Below are positions 2,864 through 14,403 of a stretch of DNA of 64,000 nucleotides, piece by piece. The notes beneath the pieces are model-generated. The model saw only the letters and a program-made list of their open reading frames with translations. It was not told the DNA's origin and did no database searches. The stretch lies in the NCBI RefSeq assembly GCF_964204645.1, contig NC_134035.1:4216001-4280000 (forward strand), written 5' to 3'. The stretch comes from Tubulanus polymorphus (lineage: Eukaryota > Animalia > Nemertea). The position numbers were made by a program, and so were the translations under genes. The number at the start of each line of letters is the position of its first letter. Within the stretch, counting starts at the first letter, position 1.

Positions 2864-4563
2864 TAAAAGAATGAACGTATTTGACCTTTTATGATATGAA
2901 TTTTTATGACCGTTTTTCAATTAGTGTTATGATTTGTAAACATCCATAAACAAACCCTGTCTGTAACTGAGCATAAAACGAGAAGCCATTCGCATACAAT
3001 TCGAGCACGATTAACAATTGCACGGCAACGACAACGCCCGAAAGGTTAAAAGTTTCCGATTGTTTGTTTCTCGAAACTTTCCTCACGATTGTCATTGATA
3101 ATCATCGATTGTAATCGATTCAGGCCGCGCGTTACTATAAAACTTTTTAACGATCGGCTCCGAGTTGAAAATAGACCCCACGGTTTACGCTTGTTTCGTT
3201 GACGAGATCTAAGCGTTAATAAGATTAAAGTTCTGCAGTTGCACGTATGGCGAGTTTGTCAAAAGGTTGAGTCGATGAAATGGTTTGTTTGATCTTTACG
3301 GGAAAACGTAGCCGTCGACGCTGTAGAGGGCCTGATATTTTCTAATAAGGAAGTTAGCACTGTGTAGAAATATAAAATGAATACACCTATATGATAAATA
3401 TGAATATTGTGAATTATAAAGTTATTAGGATATTGAGTCGTCAAAATCAATTACTATTCATTTGTATGTAAATCATCTCTCTGTATCATTATAATGACAT
3501 TTATTACATCATAATGGGATACCGACACTCACCAGATGGCGCAACTAAACACTGAGTCGTTCATATTTGTATAGCATTATTGTACCTAATACAAGGTCAG
3601 AATAAACTTTATTTTACTGAATTTCATGGTGAAAATCAGTAGATTTTCAATGGGAGAATTTCATTTCACAATAAATATAATATTAAGGTGTATAATTACA
3701 ATGTAGTACATTGACCAAATTCAATTTAGTGAGATCACACCCCCAAGTTTAAAGACTGTACCCCAAATGATTGCGGTGGGCGTCAATTGTCAACGTACAT
3801 GAATACTCAATAATAGTACTTCAATGAAATCTGAATTCAATCTTTTGCAAATTTGCAAACAAGTCACCGGATAGAAGATCCACTTTCTCATTCAGTGTAT
3901 GGTACAGATTTCACTGAAAATTGATTTCGCTAATGAGAAAAATCGATTCGAATTTAATTGAAATGTAGAGGGAAATTGAAACGCGATAACCCGGTGCCAC
4001 TAGCGATCCTGGCGGATAATCGCCGAAACCTCGCTTGCCACTGTAGCATTATTACACATTATTATATATGGATGCGGTTTTCGAAAATCGTTGGAAAGGT
4101 GCAACTTTTTCTTGGTTTAACTCGGTTTCAGTTTCGCCGCTTATTGAAATATTGACGTTTGTCCGGGTGAAGTGTGTAATTTGTGAACAATATCGACGTT
4201 AAAACCTTTAGCCGAGTCTGTGTTTTAAAAGCGAACGATCCGTTCTTTTAATATTCCGAACTATGTTATTCGTAATTATTCGGTGCAGTAACCGTGAGCT
4301 TTTTCCAATTTTTCGATTTCTATACCCGAAAACGCCCTGGCAAATCACGACCGATCTATAACGTTTACGATCTTTGTTTTCCCAGAAAGTGATGGCAAAT
4401 GGTCGAGATTTACTTTTATGCTTTAAGGTGCGAAAGATCTTGAAATTCTATAGGTTTTGTTGGTTTTGTTTTTTTTTTTTTTACAAAAAAAGTCGGCTGA
4501 TGAAATCCAAAAGAGATACGAAAACTACAGAATAGTTTTGCAGCCGTCTATCGTTTACCGTGA

Positions 4564-4580
4564 TTTATTTTATTTTATTT
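4564..4580 (-). terminator. Candidate polyadenylation signals (overlapping AATAAA) of the precursor gene
   Basis: Plus-strand tttattttattttattt gives repeated AATAAA on the minus strand, downstream of the 5152 stop. AT-rich background makes this weak. Confidence 0.3.
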
Positions 4581-5151
4581 CTCGAAAAAAAAATTCTGTT
4601 TTCCTGTTTCTACATTTCTCAACTTTCAGGAAAATAAAAGTGAAATAATTCTCAGTCAATTAATTATCAACTTTTCGAATTTGTAACCCAATTTTCAGTA
4701 AAATCTCAATCGTAAACCGATTCACCGGTTCATTGTCTGGTGTTCGGTGACTTGTTAGACAACAGTTTTGGAAGCTTAAGATCCGTGGTGCAGTGTTTAA
4801 TTCAGTGATGGACTTTGCTAGTACACCGCATCGCTGTGTTCCGATGTGTAATGAATAATTAGTTTTTATCTCTAACGAAAAAAAAACAGCACCTGTCAAA
4901 CGCAGTTAGATAGCAATAACTGACCGCAGTTAAGCGGTATAAAAATTACAGAATTTCGGTTTATACATCATAGCGGTATGGCCGTTATTCAACGCACTAG
5001 CCGGTGGAATCTTTAAAAAAATGTTCATATTATCTCCAGCACTTTTAGGGTATTAGTCAGCATTGGAAAGGTGAAGATTTCTAGCCGAAAAGCATACAAT
5101 GCGTCGACGACGCCGCGATACCGATCGATTTTACGCGAATAAGTCGATCTT

Positions 5152-5186
5152 TTACCGGCCATAATCCAGAAGAGGATTATTTACAC
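5152..5186 (-). CDS. Best candidate terminal coding exon of the precursor: (G)VNNPLLDY-GR-stop, an amidation signal
   Basis: Acceptor ctgttgtag|GT is phase-compatible with the 8130 donor. Joined product is 88 aa ending in Gly-Arg-TAA. An AATAAA cluster lies ~580 nt downstream. The polypyrimidine tract is weak and two alternative exons exist (see findings). Confidence 0.5.
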
Positions 5187-5492
5187 CTACAACAGCGCGC
5201 ATAATCCGGCCGCGGATGAACGGAAAATGATCCGGCAGCCTCTAATCATCCTCCCCGTGAACGACGTATCGAACTCGTCATTCGTCGCGATAATCAAACA
5301 TAACATTATAATTACTTCCTATATATAGAACTATCCGCAAAACGCGACACCAACGTCTCAGCGTTCGGGCTTCTTCGGAGAATCTGCTCGGGCTATGCGA
5401 GAGAGGCAATCAAACCCCGGCAAGCGAGGATGTCCTCATTAAAGCCGATCCCACGATGACCAGACCCCGTACATAGAGAAAATACAGTCATC

Positions 5493-5500
5493 TGACGTCA
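5493..5500. promoter_or_regulatory. Full CRE palindrome TGACGTCA within the precursor gene's downstream intron/3' region
   Basis: Exact consensus, with additional TGACG half-sites near 5559, 5591 and 6026-6042. Function is inferred only. Confidence 0.3.
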
Positions 5501-6749
5501 CAGCGCGTCATAATGACAGTCAAGCGGAAGCGGTCGACTTAAGTAAAAAGTCACAATATGACGGCAATTCGACGGCCAATATTACGCGCGTGACGTCCGC
5601 GCATCAGCTAGCAACCTTCCTAACTCTGGTTCAACCGATAAACTCCAATTCGAAATATTCTAAATTCTGTGACTTCGGATAACGTTTCGCCCCCCTCCTC
5701 CCCCGATGGACTATTAACGCCGTCCTATTCGCTGTCCTCTATTACAAACTAAAATGGCTAAAGGTGGGTTAGTTAGGAGTTTTGCAGGATGATGATACAG
5801 ATTATGATACGATCCGGGAATCGATCGCGCGCTAGAAACCTCGTTAATTATTGACGCGAAATCCGCGTTACTTTTTCAATTCGTTTCCCGACCGAACATT
5901 ATTACAACACGACAGAGAGAGAAAGAGATACTAGAGCGAGTAAACAAGCGTCTCGTTTAGCGAGTCACGTTTCCGAAACGCGTACGTGATTCGCCCGATT
6001 TGAAACTTCGACCGTTTATTAAACTACGTCATCAATGACGTATTCGCTCGCAGCGTTCACACTACCGTTATATAGTTAGACCGTTCCGAAATCGGCCCGT
6101 ACCCGGTTCGGACGAATTTACGGAACGGACCGAACCACCAGGCGCTGTTTACAATCGCGTCGTTGAATTCGCGACGGATATAGTTATCGCCGGTACCTCG
6201 AGATATCGCCACACGAGTATTTCATTTGGAAATCTATATCTTCTAATAGAATATTTAAGAGACCATCGCAGTTTCGCATTAATTTGAAATATGATTTGAG
6301 CTGATTTGAACGAAGGCGTTTCGTTGTAGAAGTCTACATCATTCCTTGATTCAATAATTGCTAAAGGTCACAAGTTATTCAATTTCATACATTGAAACTT
6401 TAATCAGAAAATACTATTATGATTATCCCTGGACCAGCATCAATCACCAGGCGCAATTTTCCTGCCTGATTTTCACTAAAATGTCGACTAATCTATCGTC
6501 ATGAGTTGATAGACTCAATTTGCCTAATCGATTTTTTCTAGAATTCCGTTGTAAACTAATATGAAAAGCGCATTAGGTCTAATCGAAAGAGCACAGAGAA
6601 ATGATTAAAAAGGCAACGTCGATGAAATTCGTTTTTAAATTGAAGTTTAATCCATTGAATAAAAAGATGTTATGTATACGGTGTGACTTGCGCGCATCAA
6701 TGAGACCAAATTTCATTCTCAATGGAAAACGTTTATATTCTTACAGTAC

Positions 6750-7015
6750 AACTACAAAAAAACCTTTATATTTCTACAGAGAAAAACATTAATATTTTCA
6801 TAGGAAAAAAACATTAATGTTTTATAGGAGAAAAATAGTTAATACTCTATAGGAAAAAACATCTCTATGTTTTATAGGAAAAACTTCATATTTCATAGGA
6901 AAAAATGTTTACATTTTTGTTGGAAAAAAACGTTAATGTTTAATAGGAAAAAACTTTTATATTCTATAGGAAAAAAATGTGTATGTTTACATGAAAAACG
7001 TTTACATTTTTAAAG
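6750..7015. repeat. Degenerate ~22-30 bp AT-rich tandem repeat
   Basis: Recurrent ataggaaaaaa(a)cattaatgtttt. Confidence 0.75.
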
Positions 7016-8129
7016 TAAAACTTATTCAGTGTTTAGTCATTTGCCCATGATTAACAACCAGAGCTGGGCTTCTGCAACGTTTGCGCGCAAATTCCTATCG
7101 TTTCAAAAGCTTTGAGAATATCAACGTATTTTCAACGAAAAATGCTAGCGAAATGATGAACAATATTTTCTACAATACCCGATTAAATAGATTGAATAAA
7201 TCTATGTGTCTCGATGTCTTACACGAGCCTACTTTAAAATGCCTTACACCTGAACGTGATTCGGTTTATTTCGGATGGATCACATTTTTATCAAACCGAT
7301 TCGAGTCGAAACTACAATCGAATATGATAATATGATATCGGTTATTTTTTCTATATCCATATTCAACCGATCGACCCCCGGTTCATCTTGTATTGAACCG
7401 GATACGTTGAAATCCTATCCGTGTTTACCGACGCCAGTTCGAGTAATAACCAGTTTTGAGTTGAGTGCCGCGATTTCCCTCTTCTTAAAACGTATACCTA
7501 AACGTTTTGCCCCGGGCTGAAGCGCAGATTACTCGGCGGTTATCGGGTTACAATGTGTATGTACATTGCGGCTACGTATAAACGATCTGAATTCCAAAAC
7601 GATCTGGATCTAAAATTGTCCAGTATTCATTCTGATAGCTATGATCTCATTTCAAACCCCGAAGGCAGAATTTATAAGGTGTTTGCAGTGACCAGGCAAA
7701 TAAATCAAACGTATTATTACTATGTACTGTACAGTTTAGAAACCAGTCGTTCGATAGTTTGTTTGATCCAACTCAATTCTATTTATTTGTCTTCTGACCA
7801 GGAAAATCCCTACGTAGATTTCACATGTCACTCGCGAGTTGGAAATTCTCTAAGAGTTGTTAATATGAAAAATAAACGCTCCTGTATCCCGCATATATGA
7901 TTTCAAACTTAAGGTCGAATAACTTAAATTCATTAAGTGTTTTCGATAGGTTCATCAAAACGTATCCAAAGTTCATCGATTTCGCAGAAAAAACAATTTT
8001 GTAGTTATATATTCTAGATAATAATATGAAATAAACTTCGTTGTCGATGAAAAAAGACTTTAACGACCAGTAGAAGAATTACATAAACACATAATTTCAA
8101 GTTCGCGAAAGCATAAGTTCGAAACTCAC

Positions 8130-8361
8130 CTGACAGTAATCTGTAAGCGGCCTCCAGTTGTTGCCTTCGCATTAATCGATTTCGAACGATTTCCAATAGA
8201 TTTTTCAGCGTCGAGCCCGAGATCTGGCCTTCGTCGTTGTTGATATCGTCGGACTCGGTGTCGGCCAGCGAGCGCACCGGCAGAACCAGCCCGCACAGCA
8301 CGACCACCACCGCCACCGGCAGCAAAACCATCGAAACTTTACCAGTCCGCGTGGCCATCAT
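8130..8361 (-). CDS. Coding exon 1 of a secreted neuropeptide/peptide-hormone precursor (signal peptide, acidic spacer, RR site, start of mature peptide)
   Basis: Translation MMATRTGKVSMVLLPVAVVVVLCGLVLPVRSLA (basic n-region, hydrophobic core, SLA cleavage site), then acidic DTESDDINNDEG, then LKNLLEIVRNRLMRR-QQLEAAYRLLS. Ends at strong donor TCAG|GTGAGT (phase 1). TATA box ~200 bp upstream of the ATG. Confidence 0.85.
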
Positions 8362-8524
8362 GACGCTTTCTTTTTCGCTAGTATATTTCAGGAACGTGTT
8401 AACGGTTGTGATGTGTTTGCGCGTGTGGTGCTATTTCGCGAAAGCCTGATAGTTTCTCCGTTCGTTGCTGCTGGTCTATCGAGAACGAGAGAGAAAAGAG
8501 TTTTGTTCGGTGCCGTTTGATGAC

Positions 8525-8592
8525 GAATGTTTCGATGCCAGGCGCGTTGCGAACCTATATAAATACAGACCGTGTACTTTTAAATGACGTTG
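8525..8592 (-). promoter_or_regulatory. Core promoter of the precursor gene: TATA box, Inr-like CATT, CRE half-site
   Basis: Minus strand reads TATTTATATAGG (8565-8554), ACATTC ~33 nt downstream (~8528). TGACG half-site at 8585. No upstream ATG between the Inr and the start codon at 8361. Confidence 0.65.
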
Positions 8593-9324
8593 ATATCCAT
8601 TTATTATTTCCGCGGCTCGCACCCAATAAACTACCAGGCGCCCACTGTATATTTATTAACGTCGGTTTTCGGGCAATATCGCTATGTAATAATGAGCGCG
8701 CGCGCGTGGTCGTCGTCGAACTTCGGTACAACAATATCGTCGATTCGCGTTCGCACCGTTTTAACTTTATGCGATCGAACCTTGTTTCCGTCATTCGGCG
8801 CGCCGCGCGCTGTGCGCCGTCCAATCAACATTCAGCAGACGCCGCCGCGCATTAGGCGTAATGCGAACAGCCCGAATCAAACGCGTAATAACTCTATGGA
8901 CGGTTGTTGATTGTTTTATTGCCGGGGCCCCGAGCGCGCTCGCGCTAAACAATACTTCGAAACTGATTATATATTCTATTCGATTACGTCGATCTGGACG
9001 TTTGGTCCGCGGTCGTAAACGTTAGAAAAGCGTCGATCTAATGATTACGAAGTATTCGTGCGCGTCCATAAATCGAGCACGTACAACCAGCCGACCGCTT
9101 CATCCTTTTATTACTGAGATTATTATTAATATTGTTCATCATTTCGGTAGATTAATCTTTTATCTGACGAAGCTACGGTTTGTACATTAGTGAAACGAAA
9201 GCTCGTATCTTAAAAATAAAACCAGTTAACCTATAAAGTTATGTCTATCTTCGCGTGTTTTACTGGTTCGACACCGGGTTAACGGAACCGAATTTCCCAA
9301 TTTTGTACTTCGATTAAAACATAC

Positions 9325-12400: not shown

Positions 12401-12480
12401 GACAGGTGAATGGAAAATTTGCTCTGCATTTTTTTTTCCTATTTAAAAACACGAACTTTCTTTGATTCAATTTGCGCCAA

Positions 12481-12950
12481 CAGAGCCAGAGAGACAGGGA
12501 GAGGGAGTCAGGGAGAAGGAGAGCGAGAGGGAGTCAGGGAGAGGGAGACATGGGAGAGCGACAGAGAGGAACCTGGACAGGGATAGTGAGACAGAGATAG
12601 CGATAGGGAGACAGGGGAGTAGGAGACGGGGAGGGGGAGAGGGAGGTGGAGAGAGAAACAAGGGGATAGGGAGACAGAGGGAGAGAGGCAGGGAGAGGGA
12701 GGTGAAGGAGAGGGTTAGGAGAGGGAGAGAGGGGGAAAGGGAGTCAGGTAGTGGGAGACATGGGGGAGGGAGACGGGAGGGGAGGGAGGCAGGGAGAGAC
12801 AGGGAGAGGGAGGTGAAGGGCAGGGTCAAGGAGAGGGTCAGGGACTGGGGCCCAACAAGGGGACAGAGACAGGGAGACAGACACGGGGACACAAGGAAAG
12901 GAAGAGGGAGAGGAGCAGGAGGACCGATACGGGCACAGGGAGAGAAAGAG
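12481..12950. repeat. Polypurine (G/A) low-complexity tract
   Basis: agggagagacag-type degenerate units. Explains the four overlapping ORFs. Confidence 0.9.
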
Positions 12951-14403
12951 TGCATTTAGCATATATAGGTATGATGAATTTATCATAAAGGCCACTTCGA
13001 GTCAATTTCCGATTTTCCGGACTGCGTTTTGAAGGTCGATATCTCGGCCTCCTCTTAAGGAAATGAGCTTTAGAATTCTTTGATATTTTTCTAGGCCTAT
13101 CTTTTAAAAACGAATCTTTGAACGGAAGAGACATTATAATGTCCGTTCAAGTTTATCACCCGTAATACATTATTTCCCCATTCAATTTTTTCATCGTGTT
13201 TTCTCGCTTTACCTTGTAGGGCCGTTTTCATTTCTTTCAAGCTAACTGTCGCTTCTTCACTTCACTATATTATCCCGTTTTTTAATCATATTTTTCGTTG
13301 AAAGAAAGTATTCGAAAATATAATCGGAATCACATTTGCAACACGTGTCAATTTTGACAAACTATAGGGATTAGACAAACCGGTAAGATCGTTTTAAAGG
13401 AGTACGCTTAATTTTGGGATCGTTCGTGCTTCGGGCGAACTTGCTTTACCATTCACAATAAGGTCATTTATACTGATTAAGATACGTTTAAAACTGAGTA
13501 AAATATTCCTAATATTTTAGGCAATATTTTAATCGATTTGTAAATTAACGGTTTGATTTGTAAATTCTATAGCCCTATATGATTGAAAACCGCGAAGTAA
13601 ATTACTATCTTTCTTCGATATATAGTCATTCCCATGTTGCATTATCATTTAAATTTTCGCACAAAGCTTCCCCTTGAATTTATCGAAAACTAACCCGTGT
13701 TATTCTGTTCCCTGATTTCATTTTTGTTTGATTATGCGATACCGTGAAAAACGGGTGACGTTAGTCTCCGAAAATAGCGGCGCGTCACTCACCGATTTTC
13801 GCTCATTAGCTTAAATTGAACCCGCGCGCGGATGACCCGCAGGCTTTCACTGAAAAACCCCTACTTACGCGTAAGGTTTTCTAAATGCTTCGATTTCGTA
13901 TACTATTGCGTTCTCATTGGTTCGATAGATAATGAGCCGTTCGAAATTATTTACCGAAACACGCCTCGCGCTGACTGTTCAATCAATTCAATTCAATATT
14001 CATTGACACTATATTAGAATTAGAAATTGCAGCAATACGTCAACAAAGAGGGGGTATAGTATCGGACAAAAATAGACAAGATATAAAAAGAGTGAGAACA
14101 GATTACGCCGACATTGGATTCGCGCTCAGTCAGTGTCACAGTCGTTTCTATCGAAGCCACCGAGCTAGGCGGCGATATCTGCATTGCCGGTTTCCGAGGA
14201 ATCTGTTTATAGTTCTGATCAGTATGCCAGACGATATCGTTTCTTTAGACATATATATGAACTGCGAGCCTGAATAGCCGTATTTTCAATGGTTCGATAT
14301 CCTTCGCGACATTTTTGCGATTTGAAATTATTTCGTACATTCATTTTCGTCAACGATATTCAAATTCTAACCCGGAACTGCGGAGCAGGCTCCCGTAGAG
14401 CAG

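Follow-up and report, generated by a model that had tools for sequence, protein, structure and literature searches.

Tubulanus polymorphus, a nemertean, carries on contig NC_134035.1 a minus-strand reading frame that had been annotated, from the letters alone, as the first exon of an orphan neuropeptide precursor. This initial annotation was made on a stretch of 64,000 nucleotides of assembly GCF_964204645.1 (positions 4,216,001 to 4,280,000 of the forward strand), which we call the window and whose numbering is used throughout. It joined the exon to a short exon some 3 kb downstream and predicted from the pair an amidated peptide of 20 residues with the character of a class-B GPCR ligand. The locus raises two questions, namely whether a gene is expressed from these sequences and, if so, whether the predicted peptide is its product. 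Here, we present evidence that the upstream exon opens the coding sequence of a real, spliced gene present in single copy and that a small secreted prepropeptide is its most likely product, a reading to which we assign a probability of about 60%. Furthermore, we show that the downstream exon conflicts with the available RNA, and we consider where the remainder of the coding sequence may lie.

The reading frame of exon 1 opens on the minus strand with an ATG at 8361-8359, in the context ATGATGG with a purine at -3, and continues for 77 codons and one base of a split codon, the G at 8130. A search of the 268-Mb genome found this exon in a single copy. The predicted N-terminus passes a rule-of-thumb check for the signal peptide of a generic secreted prepropeptide, with basic residues at positions 5 and 8, a hydrophobic core of 19 residues spanning residues 11-29, and the sequence VRS/LA thereafter. 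The segments that follow are, in order, an acidic spacer, STLKNLLEIVRNRLM, an Arg-Arg pair, and QQLEAAYRLLS, these last 11 residues being all of the post-Arg-Arg sequence that the exon holds. The signal peptide, the acidic spacer, the Arg-Arg site and the phase-1 donor had each been named in the initial annotation and are present as described (Table 1). The same annotation had noted that the open reading frame track is extended wrongly into the intron, and the mechanical frame (8014-8361, 115 amino acids, minus strand) does read on past the donor. A protein with this layout would be secreted and cleaved at Arg-Arg, and it may act as a peptide hormone. The proposed class-B ligand character, which implies an amphipathic helix, is not evident: the helical hydrophobic moment of the post-signal segment is 0.11, against a mean of 0.23 for shuffled sequences, and the segment is therefore no more amphipathic than its shuffles.

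Table 1. Positions of the features discussed, in window coordinates except where a locus is named
Feature	Position	Strand	Remarks
Second transcribed island, 11 bases upstream	8572..8742	.	X2 contig of 172 letters, depth 10
TATA-like letters named in the initial annotation	8556..8567	minus	overlap the start of the transcribed stretch (contig begins at 8560)
5' untranslated stretch, genome-contiguous	8362..8560	minus	X2 contig spanning 8130-8560
Coding part of exon 1	8130..8361	minus	X2 contig with 0 mismatches; single copy in the genome
Signal-peptide-like N-terminus	8269..8361	minus	about residues 1-31; rule-of-thumb feature check
Acidic spacer	8224..8262	minus	6 of 13 residues Asp or Glu
Arg-Arg, possible prohormone-convertase site	8164..8169	minus	residues 65-66; cleavage predicted
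Splice donor CAG/GTGAGT, phase 1	8124..8132	minus	last exon base 8130 (G); X2 contig match stops there
Degenerate 24/48-base tandem array in intron 1	6756..7020	.	
Alternative candidate exon, ...NRGQRI-GRR-stop	5714..5757	minus	good branch points and acceptor; not supported by X2
Proposed exon 2, G-VNNPLLDY-GR-stop	5153..5186	minus	not supported: zero X2 depth
Nearest strong non-G acceptor, candidate exon reading V-TDRVCLWMFTNHNTN-stop	2966	minus	34 bases outside the read-mapped stretch
This genome's DH44/ELH gene	L007:1105-1542		

Expression of exon 1 was assessed by mapping three public sequencing runs, designated X1, X2 and X3, onto positions 3000-8900. X1 is a DNA run, with a flat depth of about 36 and one contig across 5403-8900. 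X2 derives from the same study as X1, and its run type is not on record. Reads of X2 cover only 12 of 30 bins, comprising high-copy repeats and the intervals 8130-8560 and 8572-8742, and their depth is zero over 5758-8121, where X1 remains flat at 36. This patchy, exon-only coverage leads us to take X2 as RNA rather than as low-coverage DNA. One X2 contig of 596 letters matches the genome over its letters 1-431, from 8560 to 8130, with 0 differences, and the match breaks off precisely at the predicted donor; the depth over exon 1 is 4.5-4.7. The remaining 165 letters have no match among the listed pieces. Because a match would end on one predicted base by chance only rarely, we take exon 1 and its donor as confirmed on this one contig from one run. 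X3, a 2015 run under the same species label, holds nothing of at least 90% likeness to 3000-8900. The orientation of the contig assumes the coordinate convention for minus-strand contigs in which the 165 additional letters follow 8130; under the alternative convention, which would place them upstream of 8560, there is no AG acceptor, the two preceding bases being TT. Thus, exon 1 is transcribed and is spliced at the predicted phase-1 donor, with the contig ending at the donor and the intron uncovered, as for the spliced mRNA of a generic secreted prepropeptide. Spliced RNA leaving the 8130 donor had been named in the initial annotation as the check on its model, and transcription and splicing of exon 1 are what X2 reveals.

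The 5' end of the transcript differs from that first proposed. A TATA promoter had been assigned to letters that lie inside, or at the start of, the transcribed stretch rather than about 30 bases upstream of an observed start. Since one contig runs from 8560 and a second occupies 8572-8742, transcription starts at or upstream of these TATA-like letters. The two contigs are separated by a gap of 11 bases in a T/A-rich stretch and differ in depth (10 for the upstream island, 4.7 for 8130-8560), and the island may be either the leader of the same transcript or a separate small transcript. The leader would accordingly measure 200-380 bases; it contains an upstream ATG and, at about 8601-8606, an AATAAA. 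Such a leader, with its upstream ATG, would be unusually long for a gene encoding a small peptide and counts against a peptide-gene reading. It could instead be accommodated if the transcript were non-coding or spurious, perhaps generated incidentally at a promoter region, and the reading frame had arisen by chance; the AATAAA, the failure of exon 1 to find relatives (see below) and the absence of evidence for selection agree with such an origin. The reading frame is, indeed, predicted from features of the sequence and not from selection traced through orthologues. Against a chance frame stands the improbability of finding jointly, on a spliced transcript, a good start, a hydrophobic core, a spacer, a dibasic site and an in-frame donor, and we consider a non-coding or spurious transcript quite improbable.

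The second exon of the initial model fared differently from the first. Joining exon 1 to 5186-5153 would yield an 88-residue precursor and the amidated 20-mer pQQLEAAYRLLSGVNNPLLDY-NH2, a relative of PDF and other class-B ligands. The letters of this exon are present as described, with an AG acceptor in a compatible phase followed by ...DY-Gly-Arg-stop; its use in the transcript is what the RNA speaks against. X2 depth is 0 in the bin 5167-5363, compared with 4.5-4.7 over exon 1, and among the ten longest of the 16 X2 pieces none of more than 72 letters within 3000-8129 comes from the tail of the 596-letter contig. In addition, the exon begins with GTG, as does the intron, so that a contig spliced from 8130 to 5186 would match the genome as far as 8127; the observed match stops at 8130, which contradicts this splice. 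The acceptor itself (...ctgttgtag) has a weak pyrimidine tract, with 11 pyrimidines in 20 bases, and the exon 1 sequence to which it would be joined has no match to the Pigment_DH profile. These observations make the 88-residue precursor extremely unlikely, and the 20-mer is contradicted in its exon 2 portion by both the RNA coverage and the end of the contig match.

The Gly-Arg-stop ending that had drawn attention to the 5186 exon is not in itself distinctive. Among 340 phase-1 AG sites downstream in the window, seven open reading frames end in G-[KR]-stop, and these seven represent three independent stop contexts within these 8 kb. Because endings of this chance type occur three times independently among 340 sites, the ending gives the 5186 exon no special standing. 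In AT-rich introns, chance alone produces several phase-compatible exons ending in Gly-Arg-stop per 8 kb, and a peptide stitched together from such an exon and a real signal-peptide exon requires RNA evidence of the splice before it is synthesized or assayed.

A second candidate within intron 1 begins at an acceptor at 5757. Of all acceptors in intron 1 it ranks best, having two CTAAC branch points and 15 pyrimidines in 20 bases, and its first exon base is C, in agreement with a match that stops at 8130. Exon 1 joined to it would read ...RLLS-AILVCNRGQRI-Gly-Arg-Arg-stop, an amidation-type ending that would give an Ile-amide peptide reminiscent of DH44. The X2 depth in the bin 5561-5757 is 2.29, whereas at least 3.94 would be expected if the bin held the 165-letter tail, and the depth that is present can be attributed to dispersed repeats at 5489-5604. 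No X2 piece longer than 72 letters is listed for this exon, and no polyadenylation signal follows it. The 5757 acceptor is thus not supported by the bin depth as the start of exon 2, and we regard an Ile-amide peptide of this kind as highly unlikely. Besides the tandem array listed in Table 1, intron 1 also holds several dispersed repeats.

The RNA nevertheless constrains the exon that is used. With the next exon lying outside 3000-8129, intron 1 would span more than about 5.1 kb, and the downstream exon is probably more than 5 kb away from exon 1. Position 8129 is a G and the contig match stops short of it, so that the first base of the next exon is probably not G. In that case the split codon would specify Ala, Val, Asp or Glu after ...RLLS, and probably not the Gly that serves in amidation. 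A scan of the 48 kb downstream for such an exon, in which acceptors were rated by their strength, phase and first base and the exons by an amidation motif and a poly(A) signal, returned dozens of candidates, none of them compelling; the nearest strong acceptor preceding a base other than G is given in Table 1.

Relatives of the gene were sought exon by exon, with single exons as queries. Exon 1 has no Pfam family even at E<=10, no match in a word-index search of 5.8 billion proteins, and no relative in a HMMER search of 1.84 billion representative proteins. The sole HMMER match (E 9e-4), to a thrombospondin-repeat protein, covers only the acidic ETESDD stretch and was rejected as a relative. 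Seventeen strings of 5-8 residues, drawn from exon 1 and from both candidate exons, are absent from the roughly 1,300 proneuropeptides of PMC8557429 (Thiel et al. 2021), and nothing similar occurs among the mass-spectrometry precursors of that study; both negatives have limited power, given that the pro-regions of its 'T. polymorphus' differ markedly from those of this genome. The DH44/ELH gene and DH31 exons of this genome differ strongly from their counterparts in that study outside the active peptides, which suggests that the animal sequenced here and the 'T. polymorphus' of PMC8557429 belong to divergent lineages. By language-model comparison, the nearest neighbours of exon 1 are exclusively small prohormone precursors (NPY/PP, PDH, DH31, UTS2B, GnRH and spexin), with scores of 0.77-0.82, which shuffled sequences also attain frequently; a resemblance to a prohormone N-terminus is on this measure a weak lead. 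Exon 1 thus has no detectable relatives in the public collections searched. What is new here is an orphan gene, probably of the secreted-peptide type, the first exon of which is found in no protein of those collections.

The distance to the next exon permits a different view of the product. Exon 1 might supply the signal peptide of a longer protein, secreted or membrane-bound, with its further exons placed several to tens of kilobases downstream, and no peptide hormone would be made. An intron of more than 5 kb would suit such a protein, as would the roughly 27 kb free of recognised genes that follow on the minus strand before a plus-strand homeobox gene, and the 165-letter tail of the contig sets only a lower bound on the length of the transcript. 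Against it, the minus strand of the 48 kb downstream has no long conserved open reading frame or Pfam domain, exon 1 occurs in none of the 1.84 billion representative proteins, and its language-model neighbours, weak as they are as evidence, are small prohormones. We regard a longer protein as rather unlikely. In the reading that we prefer, the 8361-8130 exon would encode the signal peptide, the acidic spacer, Arg-Arg and the first 11 residues beyond it; the rest of the coding sequence would reside in one or more exons outside 3000-8129, with the 5186 exon not used; and the product would be a secreted peptide restricted to this lineage, such as a neuropeptide or hormone. More specifically, the gene may encode a nemertean neuropeptide or hormone that is lineage-restricted, undescribed and missing from the 2021 catalogue, the candidate peptide starting with (pyro)Gln-Gln-Leu-Glu-Ala-Ala-Tyr-Arg-Leu-Leu-Ser and continuing in a distant exon, a proposal that we advance tentatively and hold at somewhat less than even odds. 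If the full precursor were recovered and proved to be neural, one orphan peptide would be added to the nemertean signalling repertoire, together with a candidate ligand for a spiralian receptor that has no partner.

The minus strand of the 48 kb downstream of exon 1 holds no recognised gene. On the plus strand, a paired-type homeobox gene with a homeodomain and an OAR motif lies about 27-30 kb downstream of exon 1, a Pex16-like exon is present within the same 48 kb, and an intronless reading frame for an Srw-type receptor lies about 47 kb away.

Three known peptide families had been invoked for the predicted product or proposed for comparison with it. With PDF and cerebrin, the exon 1 gene shares no more than the general plan of its precursor. 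The alignment to PDF depends wholly on residues of the 5186 exon, which are unexpressed in the available data; exon 1 does not match the Pigment_DH profile (PF06324) at E<=10; and the NSELIN-type signature is absent, as had already been stated in the initial annotation. A Gly-basic end of the PDF/cerebrin type has been proposed for this gene only at 5153-5186, where X2 depth is zero.

A resemblance to CRH and DH44 had been drawn from the segment upstream of Arg-Arg. Exon 1 shares with CRH/DH44/ELH peptides the short strings RLMR and L-x-N-x-L and a helix-prone segment rich in Arg and Gln. A peptide of this family would be expected to run to about 40 residues, with a dibasic site upstream and Gly-Lys/Arg-Arg downstream. 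In exon 1 no basic site, and hence no dibasic one, separates the signal peptide from the CRH-like segment; the downstream end would lie in another exon, and the residue after ...RLLS, probably not Gly, argues against amidation directly at that point. The CRF profile (PF00473) does not recognise exon 1 at E<=10; a search of the whole genome with Pfam CRF found nothing, a result without power in that the genuine DH44/ELH gene was missed as well. Compared directly with the DH44/ELH precursor of this genome, exon 1 gave 24% identity by BLASTP with a 16-residue gap (E 0.021 for the single pair), and a shuffle test returned p ~0.06. The post-signal part was also aligned locally with six-frame segments of the DH44/ELH locus and, on the chromosome that carries exon 1, of the DH31 locus and two calcitonin-type loci. 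Random six-frame segments of the DH44/ELH locus scored 38 and 36, compared with 35 for the DH44/ELH precursor itself, and the likeness of exon 1 to that precursor is at the level of chance.

For the calcitonin/DH31 family, the best local scores were 28-33 against L006, L008 and L009, in the range that random six-frame segments also gave. Taken across the PDF, DH44 and calcitonin profiles and loci, to which the initial annotation had looked for kinship, exon 1 has no match above the noise level. The precursors of PDF, DH31 and corazonin, with no sequence match to exon 1, share its organization, in that a short first exon carries the signal peptide, the acidic spacer and Arg-Arg. The DH31 gene of this genome (L006) resembles the exon 1 gene in a further respect, having a phase-1 intron within the peptide and the donor G/GTGAGT.

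The DH44/ELH and DH31 precursors encoded by this genome agree with the published transcripts assigned to Tubulanus polymorphus (Thiel et al. 2021, PMC8557429) in the active peptides or their vicinity, and are strongly unlike them in the signal and pro-regions; in DH31, the C-terminal third is also dissimilar. When X3, a 2015 run labelled as the same species, was examined, no match was placed at at least 90% likeness. The animals behind the genome and the 2021 transcriptome look like divergent lineages sharing one name. Within the DH31 gene (L006 about 6300-6700), a phase-1 intron with the donor G/GTGAGT interrupts the peptide between NKLM and ALQAA, and a second intron lies immediately ahead of the AKR cleavage site.

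The orphan prohormone-like gene is housed in the gene-poor flank of a paired-type homeobox gene, which lies about 18-22 kb ahead of the window start and was recognized by its homeodomain exon (E 1e-14) and OAR-motif exon (E 4e-9). Further out is an intronless ORF of 451 residues that was assigned by similarity (E 1e-16) to the 7TM receptors of Srw type and may encode a peptide-receptor-like GPCR.

Features in and around the window and at the two precursor loci (L, locus stretches; G000, genome contigs)
Feature	Coordinates	Strand	Position
DH44/ELH precursor	L007:1105-1542 = G000:C8:5981000-5981437
DH31 precursor	L006 about 6100-6700 = G000:C11:2810100-2810700
Homeodomain and OAR-motif exons	L005:7764-8189 and L002:1004-1357	+
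Srw-type ORF	L003:527-1879	+	about 47 kb ahead of window start
High-copy dispersed repeats	window 3394-4181, 4773-5024, 5397-5436, 5489-5604
Degenerate tandem array	window 6756-7020		intron 1 of orphan gene
Transcribed island	window 8572-8742
AATAAA	window 8601-8606	-
Low-complexity stretch	window 12462-12959

The tandem array has a period of 24/48, which gives about 9 or 4.6 copies, and its matches amount to about 71%. The dispersed repeats, two of which flank the exon 2 proposed in the initial annotation (5153-5186), reach a DNA-run depth of about 11,800 and are plentiful in the RNA-like run too. The canonical AATAAA is positioned about 30 bases upstream of 8572, the end of a separate 172-letter RNA contig. 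Instead of being the orphan gene's leader, this island (8572-8742) could represent the 3' terminus of a different small transcript. The low-complexity stretch, which is purine/pyrimidine-skewed, is probably non-coding; it contains 160-residue ORFs on both strands, rich in Arg/Gly/Glu on one and in Ser/Leu/Pro on the other.
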